A DNA stretch of 64,000 nt from Vitrella brassicaformis CCMP3155 (GCA_001179505.1 CDMY01000243.1:434001-498000), one strand, 5' to 3'. Numbered from the stretch's first letter, positions 36,332 through 47,450 are shown. Numbers and translations: made by a program. Notes: a model not told the origin generated them from the letters alone.

Positions 36332-39300
36332 CTAGACGTCATGTCCGGCATTCGGGCTCTCTGAGTGTGTGCGTCCCGAGGCCGTCTCGGTGGTCTCCTC
36401 GACCCCGTTGTCGGTGGCCTTGTGCACCTCCACCTTCAGGGGCGACTTGGCGTCGTCACTCGGCAGCGTTGCGAACGGCGACAGGGCGTCGACGCCCTTG
36501 GCCTTCCAGTCGTCCTCAAACTCGTTGTGCTCGGTCTTCTGCAGCTCGGCCGTGAGGGACTTGACGAACTTGTTCTGCTTGTGCCGGATCTCGCTGGCCT
36601 CCATCTTGAGCCACTTGCGGCCGCCGAAGCGGTAGAACCAGACGGCGAATCCAACGATGGCGGCGGCTATGAGGACGACGATGATGATGCCGCCAATCAT
36701 CAGGCCCGGCTGGTTGTCCTCGGCCGTGAACATGTTGCTCAGCGCCAGCAGCCCCATCGGCAAAGCAGCAAACACTATCAGGATGCTGATCGATCCAACA
36801 CACACATACACACACACACACAGGCAGCCAGACACACAAGACAGACAATGTCGGTGTGCGTGGCGGGTGTGTGTGTGTGTGTGGTGGTTGGTGGCGTGTG
36901 AAGCTGACTATGCGATAGGGAACCAGCGGAAGACGGCTGTGATCTCCCCGAGGCCCCTGGCCATCCGCAGAGGGATCGCCCGCATCTGCGGAATCGGGTA
37001 CCTGCACATCCGACGCACGCAGACCAGGCAGGTGGGTGCGAGCGACGAGTGAGGGGCACACACCACACCAAGTGTACGTACGTACATGCACTCACCAAGG
37101 TGGCCACATGCACCCACGTAAATCAATGAATACCAGATGAGAATTCCGAAGATGTTGAAGAAAAGGTGACACAGTGCGATTTGCATCCCCTCGGGCTTGT
37201 CGGACACGAGTGCCGCCAGCAGCCCGGTGATGGTCGTACCCACGTTGGCACCAAGCGTCAAAGGGAACATGTGCTCAAGGTCAATCGTGCCTGTGGGGGG
37301 TGGTGGGGTGGGGGACGTCACATGACACGAATGACACGTGCAGTGACTGCACTGCAAGATAGCTATACACGTCTGTCTGTCTGTCTGTCTGTGAGTGACG
37401 CTAGATAGAGATGCGATGCGATGCGTACGTACCGAGTCCGACGAGTGGTGTGAGGACAGACGTGGTGATTGAAGACGACTGCACGAGCATCGTGAGGCCC
37501 GCACCGATGAGCATGGCCACATACTCATGGCCGATGTAGTTCTGGTGCACCACACGCTCAAAAGTCTTCTTGACCGACCCGATCAACAGGTAGCGCATCA
37601 CTTTCACCTGTGTGTGATGAAGGCAGGCAGGCACACAAACGAATGAAGAACCATTAATTACGCAAACAGCCATGGCATGGAGGGAGGGAAGAGGACACGA
37701 CACGCGCACACAGGCAGGGCAGGCCGAGGATAGATAGGTATGCTGACAGCGGTGACCGGAAGCTGTCTGTCTGTCTGCCTGCGTCCGTGAGTGTGTGTGC
37801 CCCACCCACACCCGTCGTGCCTACGTGTGCATGTACTGTAGGTACGTACCATGATGGTGAGTGCGATCATGAGCATGGCGAGGGAGACGAAGACCATGAA
37901 GACTCCATAGCTGAACTCGGCTCGCTGGAAGGCAGTCCCAGCAACCACGGCATCGCCCTTGTGAATCGCTGCACAGACACAGACAGACAGACAGACAGAC
38001 AGAGAGACAGAGAGAGGGAGACGGACAACTACTTGTGTCTGTTCTGCGCCACATGCAGTAGGTTTAGGGTCGGGTGCAGTCAGTGAGTCCTCACGGAGCC
38101 ATGCGAGTCCCTCTTTGAGGAGGTGGTCAACATATTTCGTGCTGTTGGGATCGGTAACGCTGCAGTCGAGTTCGCCTGAGGCCACCCCGGTGATGACGTC
38201 CTTGTCGGGCACGATGATGTGCTTGGTTATGACCTTGACGATCGTGTCGAAGGGACTCTCCCACCTGAGTGACGTACACACACAGGGTACGTACGTACGT
38301 TGTCAGTCACATGAATTGACTCAACAAGTACGGTAGGTACATACTCTCTCTGCGCATTGCATCCACCCCCCTCTCTCTGCGCATTGCATCCACGGGGGGT
38401 GGGGAGGGGTGGGATGGAGGTCTGGTCGTGCGTGCGTACTTTTCGCCGGTGGTTCCGATGTCGTCGTGCATGATGGCGTCAGTAAGGTGCTCGAGCATGT
38501 TAAAGATCCACTCGATCGGCAGCAGTATCAACACCGAACACAAGTTGAAGCAATCGTGAACCTACAGACACATACACACACAGCAAGGCCACCCACCCAC
38601 ACCGATAGAACGTCCGTCGGTCAAGTAAGTAGCACTAGCACACTCCCTGCCTCCCTCCCGCTGTACCTACCGTGGCCCCGGCGAAAGCCCTCTTGAACTC
38701 TCCCAAGTGGTTCATCTGGCCCAGCGACACGATCGTGTTGGTCACACTCGTACCGATGTTGGCGCCCATGATCACAGCTGCATGTCCGTGGACACACACG
38801 TAAACACACACGCGCATACGTCAGGCAGGTAAACTGCGTGGCGTGGCGTTGCGTGGCGTGGCGTGGCGTGTCGTACGGATAGCGGGTCTGATTGGTAGCA
38901 GGCCGGACCCGACGAGGCTGACAACGATGGAGGTGGTGGTAGAGCTGCTCTGCAGCGCCACCGTGGCGATGACACCGGCAGTAAGGCCGGCGATGGGGTT
39001 GGAGATGGCGCTGAAGAAAGTCCCCATACCGCACGCACCCACCGTCTTGAAGCTAAACACACACACGCGGATCCGTGCAGGTACGTCCGCCACCAGTCAG
39101 TCAGTCAGTGAGTGAGGCATCTATCTAGGTAGATATGTACAGCACTGAGTGTGTGGACGTACCTGTCTCCCATGAGCTTGAGGGCAACCAGAAACATGTA
39201 CAGAGCGCCGATGAGGATGATCACGAGGGTAGTATTCCTGAAGGAATCACATGTCACAACAAAGACACGCGTGCACATACATACACCACACCCCTTGCCG

Positions 39301-39504
39301 GGCTGGCGTTCGCGTCCCTCCGACCTCCCTCCCTTCCTTCCCCCGCACCCCGACTGACCTGACCCATCCGATGGCGCCCTTGGCGGCCGGTGGGGCCTCC
39401 TTCTCAGCGGTCTCGAGGGCCGCACCGAGCTTCGACGCACCCTTGACATACTCGGTGTCCGCCTTGGGGTGCAGCTGCTGGTCCACTGGCTGATCCGCTG
39501 ACAT
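36332..39504 (-). CDS. Sodium-dependent phosphate cotransporter, SLC34/NaPi-II (Na_Pi_cotrans) family
   Basis: Two signature repeats, [19 protein letters not shown]...[11 protein letters not shown] and [19 protein letters not shown]...GANVGTTIT, plus RAFAGATV and [19 protein letters not shown]. Confidence 0.95.
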
Positions 39505-39797
39505 CCTCACGACCACGTCCTCACAGATCTGTCACACGCACAACGACCTGCACCAGAGACACCGCAGAGAGGGCACCAGGCAGCACGGATGTTGCGCACA
39601 TGGAGGGGGGAGAGGGGTGCACAGAGAGAGTGCGGCCGACGTACCGGATGGATGTCTGCGCCAAGGGCGAAGTGGGAGCACAGGGAAGACCGAAATTTGA
39701 CGTGGGAGGCGTCTCAAGCGATCACTCCTTTGTCGCTGAGCTCGCAGATCGGGATCTGCGCGTCGAATCTCTCGCCCCCCCGTGTTTGGTGTGTGGC
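39505..39797. promoter_or_regulatory. Putative bidirectional promoter between the Na/Pi cotransporter and the beta-helix surface protein
   Basis: 293 bp separate the divergent ATGs. The interval contains the palindrome ACAGATCTGT (39523-39532) and the inverted repeat CGCAGATC-GG-GATCTGCG (39743-39760). Confidence 0.5.
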
Positions 39798-42684
39798 ATG
39801 ATGTTGAAGACCGGCGTTGTGTCAGCCCTGCTGCTGCTGGGTGCATGCCTGGGCCTCCTTGGGGCTGCTGCAGAGGAGATCATAGTCGGCAAGAACATCA
39901 CAGGTAGGTGGCTGGGATGGGTGGGATACACCCAGGCGACAGCAGCAACAATGGGGCGCAGAGAAGGAGCAGCGGCGAGAGAGATATATGCACAGATCTG
40001 ATGAATGTGTGACTGACTCATCTGGGCATTTGTTGGGGGTGGCTGTGCTTGCGGTGTTGTCTTGTGTGCAGAGGATGCGCGGTGGACCGCTGACAACACC
40101 TATTTGCTGACGGAGCAGATCTACGTTAAGGAGCCGGCAGAACTCTACATCGAACCCGGTGCGCGCTTGTGTGTGCGAATCATCCATCCACCCGTCAGGC
40201 ACCAGGATGGCTGAATGCAGTGAATGCAGCTCATGATGCAGGCCTGTGTGTCTATGTGCGCGTCGATTCAGGTGTGACGGTCAAGGCTGAGACCTTCGAC
40301 AGCAGGGGGTGAGCGAGCACATGAATGACGTCGATCGACAAGAAAGACGGACTGACCGCGTGCAGTCATGTGTCTGTGGTTGTGTGTGTGTGTGTGTGTG
40401 TGTGTGTGTCAGGTACACGACGGCCCTCATCATCAACTCGGGCGCCACCATACGAGTGAGACCACACTGCGTTGCCTTACCTGCCCTACACCCATCAAAC
40501 CAAACGCGTCTGTGCATGCGCGTGCGTATGTGCCTGTCAATTGATGCATTGATGCATTCATGACACATGGATATCAATCAGGCGATGGGGACGAGGGATG
40601 CGCCGATCACCTTCTCGGCCAACCAGCCTCCCGAGGCCATGCAGAACGCCAGGGGGCTCTGGGGTGGCATCATCGTGCTGGGCCGAGCCCCCACCAACAA
40701 GGGCGCCTCGGACGCCATCGAGGGCCTCAGCAACGCCACCTTCGGCGGCACCGACCCCGACGACAGCAGCGGAGAAATCCACTACACCAGGATATGGCAC
40801 GGAGGAGCCGGTACGTCAGTCACTAGTGAGTCAGTCAGGTGCACTGCAGTGAGGTCACAAACACAAGGTCAGGTCGATCAATCAACGTGGATATGATGTG
40901 CATTCATTCCATGCATACATACATACAGAGTTGTGGCGCGCGAATGAGATCAACGGGTTGACGTTTGGTGGTGTGGGTCGCGCCACCAAGGTGGACCACG
41001 TGGAGGTGGCATTCAACTACGACGACGGTATCGAATTCTTCGGAGGCACGGTAAGTAAGGCAGGCAGGCAGGCCGGATGGAATGGGATGCGTGGTCGGGT
41101 TTACATGTCTGTCTGTCTGACTGCACTTGTGTGGGGCCGTGTGGTGTGGTGTCTTTGTACAGGTCGACCTCAAGTACGTGTCCCTGCTGTGCAATGGCGA
41201 CGACTCACTCGACGCCGATGAGGTCAACACACACACAAAAGAGACAGACGTTCTTACAGGCAGGCGGGGCATGAGGAGTATATGCGTCTCACTTATCTGT
41301 CTGTCTTTTGGTTGCCGACTCCAATACACGCATCACATCAGGGTTACCAGGGCCGCGTGCAGTATCTGCTGGTGGTGTTGTGCAAGGACATCGCCGTGGG
41401 CGACGACTCGTTGACCGACCATGCCTTCGAGATGGACAACAACGGCAAGGACTACACGGCCTCGCCCCGCTCCCACCCCATCATCAGCCACGCCACCCTG
41501 CTGGGCCCGGGGTCGAGCAAGGACGGGTGTGACAGGAAGGTCAAGCACAGCAAGATGGCCCACTTCAGGGAGGGGCTGGGCGGCACATTCGCCAACATGA
41601 TCGTCGCCCACTCGCCCGCCGGTTTCATGTTCGAACACTTCCAGGATGCCGGGGCGGCCAACTTCACCCAGGTACTCAAGTACGTATGCGTCTACGGTGG
41701 GTGCTCTACACACCTGTTTGTTCGTATGGGGCGGCCTGGCCTGGCCTGGCGTGCATTGCATGTGGGTAGGGCTTGAGTGTGAGCGGTTCCGGGAATGAGG
41801 CCTTCCCTGACTTTCTGTATTTGAGTCCGTCGAATGTGCTGTTCAACGTGGACGATGCCGTCCATTCGGAGAGCGACATCGAGCCCCCCACCATCCAGTA
41901 CATCAGCCAAGACCCACAACTCGCAAACGTACGTCTCTCTCTGTGGCACACACACGCACATGCACACGGGTAGACGGATGGACAGCCATAGATAGATAGG
42001 TACATTACATGCCGTCCCTTCGCTCCCCGTGGGTGTGGTGTGTCAATGCAATCAATCGATGCATGTCATGTGATGTGTGTCAGGTGGACCCGTGTGTGGA
42101 CGGCCGTGAGGACGCCGACCTGTTCGATCCCAGACCCGCTGCCGGGTCACCCGCATTCTCGTGAGCCACATACATACATACAAATGAATGCACCGCACCT
42201 GGTTGCTGTGCTGCACCACTCCCCACCCCAATGTGCCCGATGGTGTGTCTGTGGTTGTGCGTGTCTGGCCATCATGGGTGACTGCAGTGATTTGGACGAC
42301 ACGCTCTCTGACGATCCGTTCTTCGACAAAGTGGGCTTCAAAGGTCAGACAGACACGCCCACATGTCCTTCATGCCCTGTCCCGTGTGCACTGCATGGTT
42401 TGGTTGTTCCTCACTGCGTCGTCTTTGCTTCTTTGCTTGCTTTGTTAACACTGGCAGGTGCATTCAATAGTAGTGACCTGTGGATAGCTGGGTGGACCTG
42501 GTGGGCCGACCAAGGCAAGCTCCCACAGACTCAGCAGGAGACAGCCGCAGACGATGCCGCAGAGGGGGGTGTCACCGATGGCGAGGGCACCTCTGCTGCA
42601 ACGCCACACACGCGCCCGGCCTCTCTCATGGCGTTCATGCTCACGTCCGTTGCCCTGGTCATCGGCATGAAAGCGGTGATTTAA
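39798..42684 (+). CDS. Secreted, probably GPI-anchored beta-helix protein resembling a bacterial extracellular lipoprotein family
   Basis: 12 in-phase exons. Signal peptide MMLKTGVVSALLLLGACLGLLGAAA; then WTADNTYLL, LYIEPGVTV, AMGTRDAPITF, WGGIIVLGRAPTN, FGGTDPDDSSGEIHYTRI, NEINGLTFGGVG, DDGIEFFGGTV, DDSLDADEGYQG, GAF...WIAGWT; C-terminal GTSAA, spacer and hydrophobic tail LMAFMLTSVALVIGMKAVI*. Confidence 0.8.
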
Positions 42685-42699: not shown

Positions 42700-45600
42700 G
42701 AGGGATGGATGGGAAGGGATGGAGCAGACACGAGGAAGAAACGTTTGTCGTGGCCTGCCTGCCTGGTCCGGTGTGTGTCTTGTCTTGCTGCCTTGCAAGC
42801 AATGCATTCATGAGGGTGGGAGCGTCCGTTTGATGGATGAATGAATGGGCAAACGTTTGGGAGGCAATGAGGGGCACTCATACAGACAGACAGATGTGCA
42901 TGCATCCATGCGTAAGGATGGATGGGATGCATTGCAATGCATGGAGTTTAGCCGTCCTTGTACGTATGTCTAAGCGTGTGAGTGAGGGAGTGAGTGAGTG
43001 TACCAAATTTCTGGTGGGGTGTCTTACGTCCCTGTCTTGCTGTCTGTATGTCTGCTTGTCTGCCTCCCGTTTTCTAGTCAGTCAGCCGTTGCTTGCGCAT
43101 CCATCCATCCATCGCACGGGGAGGGGCGATAGATAGAGACCAGCCATCTATCGCTTCGTACGCATGTCTATGCATCCTACCTACACACCCACTGACTGGG
43201 GATCGCAATGAATACGACCGACACGATGGGTACCGGAAGTAAGTCAAGTCCATCCACTTGTGTGTCTGGGGGGCTCGGCTTCTCTGGCTGTCTGTCTGTC
43301 TGCCTGTGTGTGTCTGTGGTGTGACTTGTTTGTGTCTGCCTATCGCATCAGTTCCACGTACCTCTATCTATCTATCGCACAAGTGATCTTTGCGTGTCGT
43401 GTCGGGGCATCAACGAGCATCGATGCATGCTGTGCTGCTTGCTGTCGGCTGGGGCGATAGATAAGATAGACCGGTGGAAGAACAGACAGACGGACAGGCA
43501 GATCGAGACGTGAGACGTCCTGTGGGAAAGAGACGAGCGAGTACTTAGTGGGTGGGTGTGGGTGTGGTTGGTTGAGTGCATATGGGCACAGGTAGATGAG
43601 CGGTGGGCGTGTGATGGGAAATGAAATGCCGACAGACCGGTGTTTTTGAGGCCGGTGTGTCGTTTTCCCCTCAAACAACAAATACCATACCGGTCGGTGG
43701 ATAGGATTGATATTCATTGGCGACCTCTTTCGTGTCCGTGGGTGGTTTCGGTGGCCTGGCCTTGACTGGCGGGAGTGGGTGGAGGGCCCCGCAGACAGAG
43801 TGCCCGACCCGCCTGCCACAAAAGCTCATGAATGAATGAATGAATGAATGGGGGAACAGAGAGAGAGAGTATTTCTTACATGTACGCCACGCTATGCTGT
43901 GCTCTGTTTTGTGTGTGTGTGGCTCTAGTCGTTGCATGACATGACATACGCACGCCCGTTGCCCCTCGATTGCACCCCCCGCACACCCGTCAGTCAGTCA
44001 TTATAATGCACCCACTTCTGCGTGTATGTCTGTGTGTGTGTGTATCCCTTTTCCCGCTGTGGGCCACAGCACAGCGTGCATTCATCCCACCCATCTGTGT
44101 GCAGCTCAGCTGCTGGCCTGCCTGCCAACGGTCGCTCTATTGCTTGCTCCACGAGTGTGGGAGATTGGTTGATTGACACACTCACCCACCCACCTGTCTG
44201 TGTGTGTGTGTGTGCTATCGTACTTTTATCTGTAAGTGTGGCGCCTCCGTTTTGATACTTCCGTCAGTCTTTTGATCGAGGACGTTTTGCCGGACAGACG
44301 AGGAGGCGAGGAAGGGGTGGCGAGCTTGGTGAGTGATACCGCTGCCTGATGGTTGTTCGTTGTGTGTGTGATCGATCATTAATGATAAGTATACTACGGT
44401 GATTTTCTCGGCTGCCTGCCTGCCTGCCTGCCTGAAGTAGGAAAGTGTGTCGTGTCAACCAACGGATATGAGAGAGCAGATGCCACGGCACGGTAGGTTA
44501 TTCATTGGTCCATCGATCGTTTCGGACATTGCATTGCACGAGGACGTGACAGTGTGTCAGTCAATCAATCAACGCAGTGGACGGCCCTTATCAAATCATT
44601 CTCACGGTCACCTCTCAGGTCGTCTCGTCTCGTCCACACCACACTTGTTTCTACCGTGAAGCTAGTAAGACACCCCAAGACACGCAGAGCTCGCTCCGCA
44701 AATGCTTTCACTGACGTACGGATGCACGGACGGATGCACTAGCTAGCGAGGGGGTGGGGTACTGTATGGGGGGCACGTATAAATGACTGAGATCGGTCGG
44801 ACTCATGCACACAACACACATGAGTGCGCTCACTCATGATGCATGGCCACACACACACGTGATGACTGACATGAATGAATGCACCGGTGGGTGGAATTGT
44901 GGGTGGGAGCCATCAAAAATGGGCGCCGACCGCCTGGATCCGATCCATGCGATGCACTCACGTACTCACACACACACACACACACTCGTTGGTTCCCTCT
45001 CAGTCGGTTGGTTGGTTTTTTCATTCAAACGCACCCACACGAACACTGCCGGCACAGACAGACGAGACGAGACAACACATACATACCTCACGAGGTGGGG
45101 GGNNNNNNNNNNNNNNNNNNNNNNNNNNNNNNNNNNNNNNNNNNNNNNNNNNNNNNNNNNNNNNNNNNNNNNNNNNNNNNNNNNNNNNNNNNNNNNNNNN
45201 NNNNNNNNNNNNNNNNNNNNNNNNNNNNNNNNNNNNNNNNNNNNNNNNNNNNNNNNNNNNNNNNNNNNNNNNNNNNNNNNNNNNNNNNNNNNNNNNNNNN
45301 NNNNNNNNNNNNNNNNNNNNNNNNNNNNNNNNNNNNNNNNNNNNNNNNNNNNNNNNNNNNNNNNNNNNNNNNNNNNNNNNNNNNNNNNNNNNNNNNNNNN
45401 NNGGGGAGCTAGCCATCGAAGTGCTTTAGAGGACCACAAATTGCAAGTAAGACGTATCTATCTATCCACTGCAGACCGGACAGCAAGTCAGACAGGCACA
45501 CAGCAGGCAGGCAGGCCACTCACTCAGTACAAGGAGGGAGGGAGACAGATGTGTGTGGGTTGGTTCACTAGCCGCCAAAGAGATAGATGGATGGATGGAT

Positions 45601-47450
45601 GGAGTGATGCAGTGATGCCGTCTGTCTGCATTATGTATGCATGCATGCATGTATGTGTATGTATGTATGTATGTATGCGATAGATGGAGCGATCAGATCC
45701 CTCCCCCCACACTACAAGACAAAACAACACAACACACGACACGACAAGACAAGACACGACAACAAATTACACATCAACACGCACTCCAAGCCCCAGTTAG
45801 TTAGTTATCAACGTACGTACAAAAGCAGACAGACGACCAAAAGAAGCAAGGAAGGAAGCCAGCCGGACAGCCAGGTATGTACCTAGTGAACCAACTTGTC
45901 CATGCCATGCAAACGAAAATCAAGCATCCATCCACCCGAATGAATGCTATGTCCATCCCTCCCTCCCTCCCTCCCTTGGTCCGTCGTGTGTCGAGTCCAT
46001 CAGGGTGCATACATACATACATACATACATAGGTACGTCCATGCGGACTCTCGTATTGAGAATACATGCACGCACCTGCACACCCGATACGATCGATACA
46101 CACCACACCACACGACCGCCGGCAAAGGGGGCCCCACCCGCCCACCCACTAAAGACAGACACACACAACCCCCAAAACACGGCGTATGCATGCACATCCA
46201 CCCACCCACCCATGCCATACACGTGCACACATGACGATAAAACAACCGTCCCATCAACCAGCCAACCAACAATGACCAACGAATCAATCAATCGATGAGG
46301 CATGGGCGGGTGAGTGCATAAATAAAACACAACCATTACAGAGAGAGGTAACTTGCCTATAGCCGTCAGTCACACCACACACACCACACCCATGGATGGA
46401 CGGATGGATGTACAGAAAAAGACACACACACATCAAGAGATCAAGAGATCAAGACAGACAGACAGACAGACATCCAAGCGAACGAGGGAGGAGATGGGCA
46501 GACCGGCAGGTAGACAGGCAGACAGATAGATAGGCAGATGGAGGGGCATGGAGGGGCAGGAAGTAAGCGAGTTACTTACTGCGTTACCTACACTTGTGCA
46601 GGGAGGGCACACAGACAGACGCACGTACCGTACAGGCCCAGACATGCAGACAGACAGACAGACAGACATGTGAGTGAGTGTGTAGCTAGGTCCACGCATC
46701 CACTCACTCCACTAACTCACCCCTCTACCCCCATGGATGTATATGCACTCACTGCACGGGTGTACTGAGTGCGAGTGCGATGGATGGAAACGGACGGAGT
46801 GGTCCATGTCCTGTGCTGTGCTGGCTTGATGAATGAATGAATGAATGGATGAATAAAGCACACACAACGTATACCGATACGTATACACACATAGATAGCA
46901 TAGCTTGATGTGTGTATGTGTATTGGTATGTGTTATGTGAGTAGATGAGATGGAGTCGGCAGGCAGGCACTCACTCACAAGCAGCGGGGGGGCTCGGTTC
47001 CACCACTCATGGCATGTCACACTGACTGAGGGCACACACACACACAAAGAAAGACATAGATAGGCAGAGAGTGAGTGACATTGACTAGAGGATGGGAGGG
47101 AGGAGAAAGCACTAACTAGTCTGTTCGTGTGTTCACGAACCCACTCACACACAGTGGACTTGCCTAACGCGTTGGTATGAGTACAAATGCATGGGCTTCT
47201 TTATACGTACGTACTTGAGGAAGGCAGCCAACGCGCCAGGACTCAGTTTCGCCAGTTGCAGCACAAGTAGACTACCTCACTCACGGGGCTGCACACACAC
47301 ACAGTACGGACACGGACACACAGACAGACAGACCGACAGACGGACGGATGCACTCACTCACTCACTCACGGAGAGAGCAGCGAGAGGCCCCATAGCACGT
47401 CAGTCCCCTCACTAACTCACTAACTGAAGCACACCCCTCTCTCCTCTCTC
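42700..47450. repeat. Microsatellite-dense, apparently non-coding region
   Basis: Dense (GACA)n, (CA)n, (TATG)n, (GGAT)n and (GAAT)n tracts. The ORFs here are low-complexity translations with no coding codon bias. Confidence 0.7.
45103..45402. other. Assembly gap (300 N)
   Basis: A run of 300 N. Confidence 1.

Follow-up and report, generated by a model that had tools for sequence, protein, structure and literature searches.

ElpS of Caulobacter crescentus (CC0170 / CCNA_00169) is made under phosphate starvation, and is found at the outer-membrane surface, from where it is set free in a step that depends on the type II secretion system (T2SS); its overproduction raises extracellular phosphatase activity (PMC2996285). 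The T2SS that releases it belongs to the Caulobacter PhoB regulon (PMC11208175). Three ElpS homologues of Flavobacterium johnsoniae, FI, FII and FIII (Fjoh_3856, Fjoh_0546 and Fjoh_4889), are induced upon depletion of inorganic phosphate (Pi) with a log2 fold change of ~10-14 (PMC8115612, Lidbury 2021); FI makes up 18.7% of the exoproteome, and FII is a product of the phoBR operon, in which its gene adjoins that of a TonB-dependent transporter (PMC8115612). Few secreted proteins of Caulobacter and Flavobacterium are as abundant, or as strongly induced by phosphate starvation, as ElpS and FI-FIII. In Bacteroides, BT4056 was proposed to be the lid of the TonB-dependent transporter BT4055, and the pair is adjacent in 621 genera (Price 2023 preprint). 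Here we describe a eukaryotic member of this family. It is encoded in a stretch of 64,000 nucleotides from Vitrella brassicaformis CCMP3155 (CDMY01000243.1:434001-498000; this whole stretch is referred to as the window, and positions are counted from its first letter), where its gene and the gene for an SLC34-type Na+/Pi cotransporter (Na/Pi) diverge from a common 293-bp spacer. We regard this gene pair as a reasonable, although unproven, candidate for a phosphate-scavenging unit.

The elpS gene was located by an exact search of bacterial genomes with the primer at the elpS start printed in PMC2996285. The search returned three loci, two from Caulobacter vibrioides and one from a Proteobacteria metagenome-assembled genome labelled CAULO1; the open reading frame (ORF) encodes 515 amino acids (aa) and has the published LAGC lipobox at positions 17-20. 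BLASTP aligned ElpS and the Vitrella protein with 35% identity over 235 aa (E=1e-30), to which a match at the C-terminal W-x-GWT is added; the WGG, DDGxEFFGG, DDSLDxD and ExDxNG motifs are also common to both. Thus, by sequence comparison, the Vitrella protein is verified as a true homologue of ElpS. The initial annotation had proposed this homology, together with a kinship to phosphate-starvation lipoproteins of Bacteroidota, and the latter was right as well: FI-FIII and BT4056 belong to the same family by published homology to ElpS (PMC8115612; Price 2023 preprint).

In what follows, P0001, P0002, etc. are database proteins and L001-L016 are the genomic loci that were compared, L013 being the locus of the Vitrella pair. 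The 510-aa product is 100% identical over its full length to Vitrella P0001, which the precomputed annotation assigns to PF28492 (Beta_helix_4). Pfam and NCBIfam scans gave no match for this protein; the Pfam release scanned predates PF28492. Among the candidates scored, 1256 homologues had E<=1e-3, the top bacterial ones with E~1e-95.

Both gene models coincide with the public annotation of CDMY01000243.1 (a 597-aa Na_Pi_cotrans protein and a 510-aa Beta_helix_4 protein at the same positions), which confirms the divergent arrangement proposed in the initial annotation, with a transporter gene on the minus strand and a second gene on the plus strand 293 bp apart. The 597-aa product is identical to CEL96667.1 / P0377 and to one MMETSP transcript. 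Paralogues of either gene were not found within the window. Genes in the window are intron-rich, and its GC content is ~55-60%. Short runs of simple-sequence DNA, of the types (GT)n and (CAGA)n/(CTGT)n, occur in introns of both genes (at 40380-40410, 37390-37410, 37990-38010, and others) and give rise to many spurious ORFs.

Because the closest relatives of the beta-helix protein are mostly bacterial, its gene could be taken for bacterial contamination or an assembly artefact. However, the gene has 11 GT-AG introns and a GC content similar to that of its neighbours, it lies within a 669-kb contig where it is flanked by typical eukaryotic genes, and its product carries a eukaryotic signal peptide and a C-terminal anchor instead of a lipobox or a type IX secretion system (T9SS) domain. 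Gene structure, introns and eukaryotic context together rule out contamination or an artefact, the probability of which we consider negligible.

In bacteria, a gene for a TonB-dependent receptor lies immediately downstream of the family gene at L001, L002, L003, L007, and L008. The two Pseudobacteriovorax loci (L001 and L002) consist of the family gene followed directly by the receptor, and in Psychroflexus (L003) the receptor is followed in turn by an OmpR-type regulator and a kinase. On the metagenome contig L008, a PhoR-domain kinase and its regulator are encoded immediately and divergently upstream of the family gene, with PhoU and Ppx nearby. An OmpR-type regulator and a kinase are located directly upstream of the family gene on a Tara contig (L009), and a Metallophos gene is located divergently upstream on another metagenome contig (L010). 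The receptor downstream of elpS itself is homologous to the TonB-dependent receptors beside family members at two other loci. The association with TonB-dependent receptors that the initial annotation had cited therefore holds, both at our five loci and in the published survey (Price 2023 preprint). Family proteins of bacteria are surface lipoproteins or T9SS cargo, and their genes, together with that of the cognate receptor, are often found near phoBR. The suggested tie to phosphate regulons holds too: the phoBR-type genes at L008, the location of FII in the phoBR operon, and the induction of ElpS and FI-FIII by Pi depletion make the phosphate-regulon link of the bacterial homologues clear.

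Metals and metal chelates are the usual cargo of TonB-dependent receptors, and the family could comprise surface receptors for such ligands (Fe, Ca), with an indirect link to phosphate. An obligatory bacterial partner that is a TonB-dependent receptor would be in line with this, as would the invariant acidic ladder described below. At L010 (1-6781), the Beta_helix_4 gene diverges from the Metallophos phosphoesterase gene, and next come a DUF4856 / Peptidase_M75 (imelysin) / HTTM cluster and a Plug-domain receptor, a combination that is usually tied to iron uptake. However, FI-FIII respond specifically to Pi depletion and not to N or Fe limitation, and are tightly repressed under Fe limitation (PMC8115612); moreover, it is phoBR, PhoU and Ppx that surround the family gene at L008. 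Metal binding as the primary role is thus very unlikely in our judgement.

The Vitrella protein and ElpS have a homologous beta-helix core in common and, if the prediction for Vitrella is correct, surface display via an anchor, which in ElpS is a lipid. On the other hand, the LAGC lipobox of ElpS is N-terminal, a T2SS-dependent protease releases the protein, and the gene for a TonB-dependent receptor follows downstream of elpS. The Vitrella protein, by contrast, is made with a eukaryotic signal peptide and a C-terminal anchor from a gene with 11 introns, and it has a Na/Pi symporter instead of a TonB partner as its neighbour. Of the two, ElpS is the one for which induction by phosphorus (P) starvation has been demonstrated. 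FI-FIII and BT4056 are likewise extracellular or surface-located and have a predicted pectin-lyase-like fold, but these bacterial proteins have been proposed to cap a TonB-dependent transporter. No TonB-dependent receptor is adjacent to the Vitrella gene, the neighbours of which encode the Na_Pi_cotrans protein and an ANF_receptor/TRP protein; such a receptor is not expected in a eukaryote, and the Vitrella protein must therefore work alone or with a different partner. The closest relatives of its module are T9SS-sorted Beta_helix_4 proteins of Marinimicrobia and Bacteroidota (e.g., P0005-P0009 and P0021; ~45-47% identity), many of which also have a single module. Their C termini contain T9SS sorting and FlgD-Ig domains (PF18962 and PF13860), whereas the Vitrella protein ends in a hydrophobic tail. 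It has neither a Cys lipobox nor a PF18962 domain; the lipobox and the T9SS sorting signal are features of the bacterial members and not of the Beta_helix_4 domain.

Hydropathy analysis revealed exactly two hydrophobic segments in the Vitrella protein, aa 7-23 and aa 490-506, the latter of which stops 4 residues before the C terminus and has small residues (S, A, A) 10-13 residues upstream of it. To judge from these features, a glycosylphosphatidylinositol (GPI) signal and a minimal tail or membrane anchor fit equally well. Thus, the N-terminal signal peptide and the C-terminal hydrophobic tail reported in the initial annotation are both present, but its GPI-type label is only one of two equally good descriptions of the tail. 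The protein is predicted to be located at the cell surface. Plastid targeting was considered and rejected as unlikely: the beta-helix starts directly after the signal peptide, which leaves no room for a plastid transit peptide.

A confident AlphaFold2 model built with 45 homologues (mean predicted local distance difference test [pLDDT] score of 82; predicted template-modelling [TM] score, pTM, of 0.83) has a right-handed beta-helix at ~aa 25-460, in which strands begin at aa 26, and beyond the helix the chain is disordered (pLDDT <50 for residues 462-510). All matches that Foldseek retrieved with this model from the PDB are beta-helix proteins, namely phage tailspikes, the alginate epimerases AlgE4/AlgG, PL6/PL9 lyases and polygalacturonases, and all are remote (best E=2e-3, TM score <=0.49, identity 9-15%). 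A search of PDB sequences with the family profile gave 0 matches. Thus, the modelled beta-helix fold is clear, its resemblance to PL1/PL6/PL9/GH28 enzymes is at the level of fold only, and no solved relative explains the function of the protein.

Conservation was measured over 312 family modules and over 45 full proteins. In the 312 modules, near-invariant positions are W118-G-G; N173/E174/N176; D199, D200 and E203 with FGG; D221, D222, D225 and D227; E258 and D260; R304; and N313, all of which are kept in Vitrella. Each position of the acidic set, as well as R304 and N313, is at least 96% conserved in these modules. Among the positions that are at least 90% conserved, the Vitrella protein retains all but five, and these five are conservative swaps. 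Written as motifs, the family core that Vitrella retains reads WGG; DDGxExFGG; DDxxDxD; ExD; R; N. The spacing of the acidic residues suggests that they form a ladder across successive turns of the helix, which would fit a metal or ligand site.

These properties could also belong to a surface protein that is active on glycans or binds them, in the manner of pectate lyases, alginate epimerases or tailspikes. Such a protein would act on the alga's own wall or mucilage or on environmental polysaccharides and have no direct role in phosphorus nutrition. The only structural neighbours of the model are, after all, carbohydrate-active beta-helices, including tailspike depolymerases, and the combination of an Asp/Glu ladder with a conserved Arg recalls Ca-dependent lyases such as pectate lyases. 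Models resembling polygalacturonases were also noted by Lidbury et al. (PMC8115612). However, the weak structural matches indicate a generic fold, they are not accompanied by sequence similarity to any solved structure, and induction of the bacterial members is specific to Pi depletion (PMC8115612). We consider a purely glycan-directed role unlikely.

The family is not confined to bacteria and Vitrella. The best non-self match of the Vitrella protein, P0002, is encoded on a contig with Uso1 and RING-finger neighbours and ends in a transmembrane helix and a cytosolic tail. A search based on P0002 identified family members in Ostreobium quekettii, Pinguiococcus, Chrysochromulina tobinii (annotated as "lipoprotein"), Emiliania huxleyi (EMIHUDRAFT_443725), and Amorphochlora, as well as in an MMETSP transcriptome, in many marine eukaryote catalogue entries, and in the choanoflagellate Stephanoeca diplocostata. 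Besides Vitrella, the eukaryotic distribution of the family thus includes haptophytes, a green alga, stramenopiles, a chlorarachniophyte, and a choanoflagellate. Stephanoeca (P0250 / P0359 in EukProt) is heterotrophic, and its protein has two modules and a transmembrane anchor; the family is therefore not restricted to algae. In Ostreobium, the family is expanded, with two tandem Beta_helix_4 genes on one contig (L011 10001-17958 and 26350-27958) and a third on a separate contig (L016). No Chromera homologue was present among the matches listed.

Complete eukaryotic models have a signal peptide, two or three tandem modules, and a C-terminal transmembrane helix with a tail of 29-77 aa. The Vitrella protein has the same general layout of signal peptide, beta-helix and (predicted) C-terminal anchor, but it contains one module, and its tail ends 4 residues past the hydrophobic stretch. 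The signal peptides and transmembrane anchors of the eukaryotic homologues point to a conserved role at the cell surface that does not involve a TonB receptor. In a neighbour-joining tree of modules (100 bootstraps; a crude method), most eukaryotic modules form clades with 54-73% support, and the Vitrella module is placed on a long branch outside these clades, beside Bacteroidota-type modules, with 79% support. This is a hint that the Vitrella copy may have been acquired separately from those of other eukaryotes. Our literature search found no mention of EMIHUDRAFT_443725 and no work on eukaryotes among the papers it covered that cite the ElpS paper; to all appearances, the TonB-independent branch that this family has in eukaryotes has not been discussed before.

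The other gene of the pair encodes a transporter with two PF02690 (Na_Pi_cotrans) repeats (E=3.9e-34, two stretches); NF037997 from NCBIfam also matches in two stretches. The match to TIGR01013 is strong (E=1e-82), but its score of 278.5 bits is below the curated cut-off of 306.15, and by this comparison the transporter is a clear homologue that lies outside the narrowly trained TIGR01013 subfamily. Together with a QSSS motif in each repeat, these matches uphold its identification as SLC34-type in the initial annotation. Its closest relatives are Na/Pi symporters of diatoms, Triparma and other ochrophytes (43-51% identity), and judging by sequence it is an ordinary algal SLC34-type carrier. 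In Phaeodactylum, several Na/Pi symporters are upregulated under Pi limitation and located in the plasma membrane (PMC7283521). By analogy with these diatom homologues, the Vitrella transporter is probably located there as well. PtNapi2/4/5 of Phaeodactylum also contain two Na_Pi_cotrans repeats with QSSS motifs; unlike them, the Vitrella transporter has an additional C-terminal transmembrane segment and a charged tail.

Two MMETSP transcripts of the transporter gene differ at the end of exon 9 (37096-37134, minus strand). One of them yields the full 597-aa form. In the other, P0121 (Transcript_4215), splicing does not occur at the productive donor (GTATTC) but 38 nt further downstream at GTGAGT, which is the stronger of the two donors; the resulting frameshift leaves a truncated protein that ends after "ILIW". 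This may be a case of unproductive alternative splicing.

Several observations weigh against the interpretation of the two genes as a phosphate-scavenging unit, and those that concern gene order suggest a simple alternative: in a compact genome rich in head-to-head genes, their adjacency would be a coincidence, and the beta-helix protein would be coupled to the transporter neither functionally nor transcriptionally. The Vitrella genome contains 22,817 genes, and the median distance between neighbours is 92 bp. Closely spaced genes tend to be arranged head-to-head, an orientation that is over-represented, and their co-expression is mostly modest. A head-to-head spacing of 293 bp is thus ordinary for this genome. 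The next pair upstream, an IF-2-type gene (minus) and a gene for a 281-aa protein with no Pfam match (plus), is also head-to-head (window ~32308 / 32524; L013 2511 / 2727), with a gap of 215 bp between genes that are evidently unrelated, which bears out a caveat of the initial annotation about short pairs of this kind. A Na/Pi gene was found near Beta_helix_4 at none of the six other eukaryotic or eukaryote-like loci (L004, L011, L012, L014, L015, and L016). The two genes thus seem to be neighbours only in the Vitrella lineage. Transcripts of the Na/Pi gene are present in MMETSP, whereas the beta-helix protein has no match among the MMETSP peptides, an asymmetry that counts weakly against strict co-expression. 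Published RNA-seq data for Vitrella come from standard culture only. The plant-type P1BS element (GNATATNC) occurs at 13 sites in the window and at 0 sites in the 293-bp spacer.

On the other hand, independent evidence from bacteria links exactly the ElpS family to the Pho regulon, the neighbouring gene encodes a phosphate importer, and both products are predicted to reside at the cell surface. As phosphate transporter genes are limited in number, a family member is also unlikely to have come to lie beside one by chance: if there are a few dozen such genes among the 22,817, the odds of having one as the immediate neighbour should be well under 1%. With both sides considered, coincidence is a serious possibility, to which we give somewhat less than even chances. 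The two genes may be co-expressed from the shared spacer; that they form a co-regulated unit seems possible to us, but on balance doubtful.

Other points concern the function of the beta-helix protein rather than the location of its gene. To our knowledge, no biochemical activity has been described for any member of the family, 15 years on, and the Beta_helix_4 fold, as modelled, is equally compatible with a glycan-active enzyme. Purified, refolded ElpS had no phosphatase activity (PMC2996285). The receptors that partner the bacterial proteins import bulky ligands, and the natural ligand may therefore not be orthophosphate. The same consideration bears on the proposal that the eukaryotic symporter takes the place of the bacterial TonB receptor, which did not survive closer inspection: TonB receptors bring bulky ligands across the outer membrane, whereas SLC34 carriers accept orthophosphate only, and their bacterial counterpart is the Pi uptake step at the inner membrane. 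Coupling would thus require that the beta-helix protein, alone or with phosphatases, deliver free Pi. A phosphorus-related function of the beta-helix protein in Vitrella is consistent with the behaviour of its bacterial homologues; whether it acts in phosphorus acquisition is, in our estimate, about evenly balanced.

The two genes are a genuine Vitrella pair, and the explanation that we favour is that the ElpS-type protein has a phosphorus-related role at the surface. The single beta-helix module would be displayed on the Vitrella cell surface via a C-terminal lipid or membrane anchor, and the protein would keep the ancestral job of the family, i.e., the capture or processing of an extracellular phosphorus-containing substrate, which would be handled through the conserved acidic groove. 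Pi would be released at the surface, either directly or with the help of phosphatases, and then imported by Na/Pi symporters such as the neighbouring one. Taken as a whole, this explanation is tentative, and its chances are a little short of even.

Coordinates of the two genes and of the features within them are given in Table 1. Outside the pair, GC content falls to 0.44 at positions 44001-46000, compared with 0.55-0.60 elsewhere in the window. A very large gene (2264 aa, minus strand), with ANF_receptor / periplasmic-binding, LRR, DUF7630 and TRP-like domains, is located 4.5 kb downstream of the beta-helix gene and extends from 47243 to beyond 52684 (L013 17446-22887).

Table 1. Features of the divergent gene pair in the Vitrella brassicaformis window
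Feature	Position	Strand	Details
SLC34-type Na+/Pi cotransporter gene	36332..39504	minus	ATG 39504, stop 36332; 597 aa; 11 exons; GT-AG introns; spliced in frame
Exons of the Na/Pi gene	39504-39359, 39237-39163, 39052-38877, 38777-38671, 38561-38440, 38264-38095, 37968-37850, 37607-37433, 37290-37134, 37001-36909, 36785-36332	minus	
QSSS motif, repeat 1, aa 108-111	38941..38952	minus	Read from sequence
QSSS motif, repeat 2, aa 348-351	37470..37481	minus	Read from sequence
Spacer between start codons	39505..39797		293 bp; must accommodate both 5' untranslated regions and any shared promoter
PF28492 (Beta_helix_4) ElpS-family gene	39798..42684	plus	ATG 39798, stop 42684; 1533-nt frame; 510 aa; 12 exons; GT-AG introns
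Exons of the beta-helix gene	39798-39903, 40072-40158, 40272-40308, 40413-40455, 40582-40810, 40929-41050, 41163-41222, 41342-41671, 41770-41928, 42084-42160, 42288-42343, 42458-42684	plus	
Predicted signal peptide, aa 1-24, MMLKTGVVSALLLLGACLGLLGAA	39798..39869	plus	Hydropathy peak at aa 7-23
Right-handed beta-helix module, single, aa 25-460	39870..42531 (including introns)	plus	AlphaFold2 model
Acidic residues D199 D200 E203 / D221 D222 D225 D227 / E258 D260	41021..41437	plus	Putative metal or ligand site
Conserved R304 and N313	41567-41569 (R304), 41594-41596 (N313)	plus	Downstream of the acidic residues
C-terminal hydrophobic tail, aa 490-510, ASLMAFMLTSVALVIGMKAVI	42619..42681	plus	Hydropathy; follows a disordered Ala/Gly/Thr-rich linker

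A broader proposal, which we rate as rather unlikely, is that ElpS-family proteins are autonomous extracellular phosphorus-mobilising proteins (binders or enzymes that use the conserved acidic groove) and not mere lids of TonB transporters. Several lineages of eukaryotic plankton would have obtained them from marine bacteria, perhaps on more than one occasion, and re-anchored them by transmembrane or GPI signals, and in Vitrella a common promoter would have linked one copy to a Na/Pi symporter. If true, this would define a previously unrecognised class of eukaryotic phosphate-stress surface proteins. The TonB-free eukaryotic copies bear directly on the "transporter lid" hypothesis: the existence of intact, surface-anchored copies in organisms that have neither an outer membrane nor a TonB system argues for an independent function of the protein. 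A eukaryotic, TonB-independent branch makes the function of the family more tractable, and the proximity of the Vitrella gene to that of a Na/Pi symporter is the first genomic hint, albeit a weak one, of a link between the ElpS family and phosphate in a eukaryote. Should the algal copies prove responsive to phosphate stress, phosphorus acquisition in eukaryotic phytoplankton would gain a new component, and ocean metatranscriptomes a new marker of P limitation.

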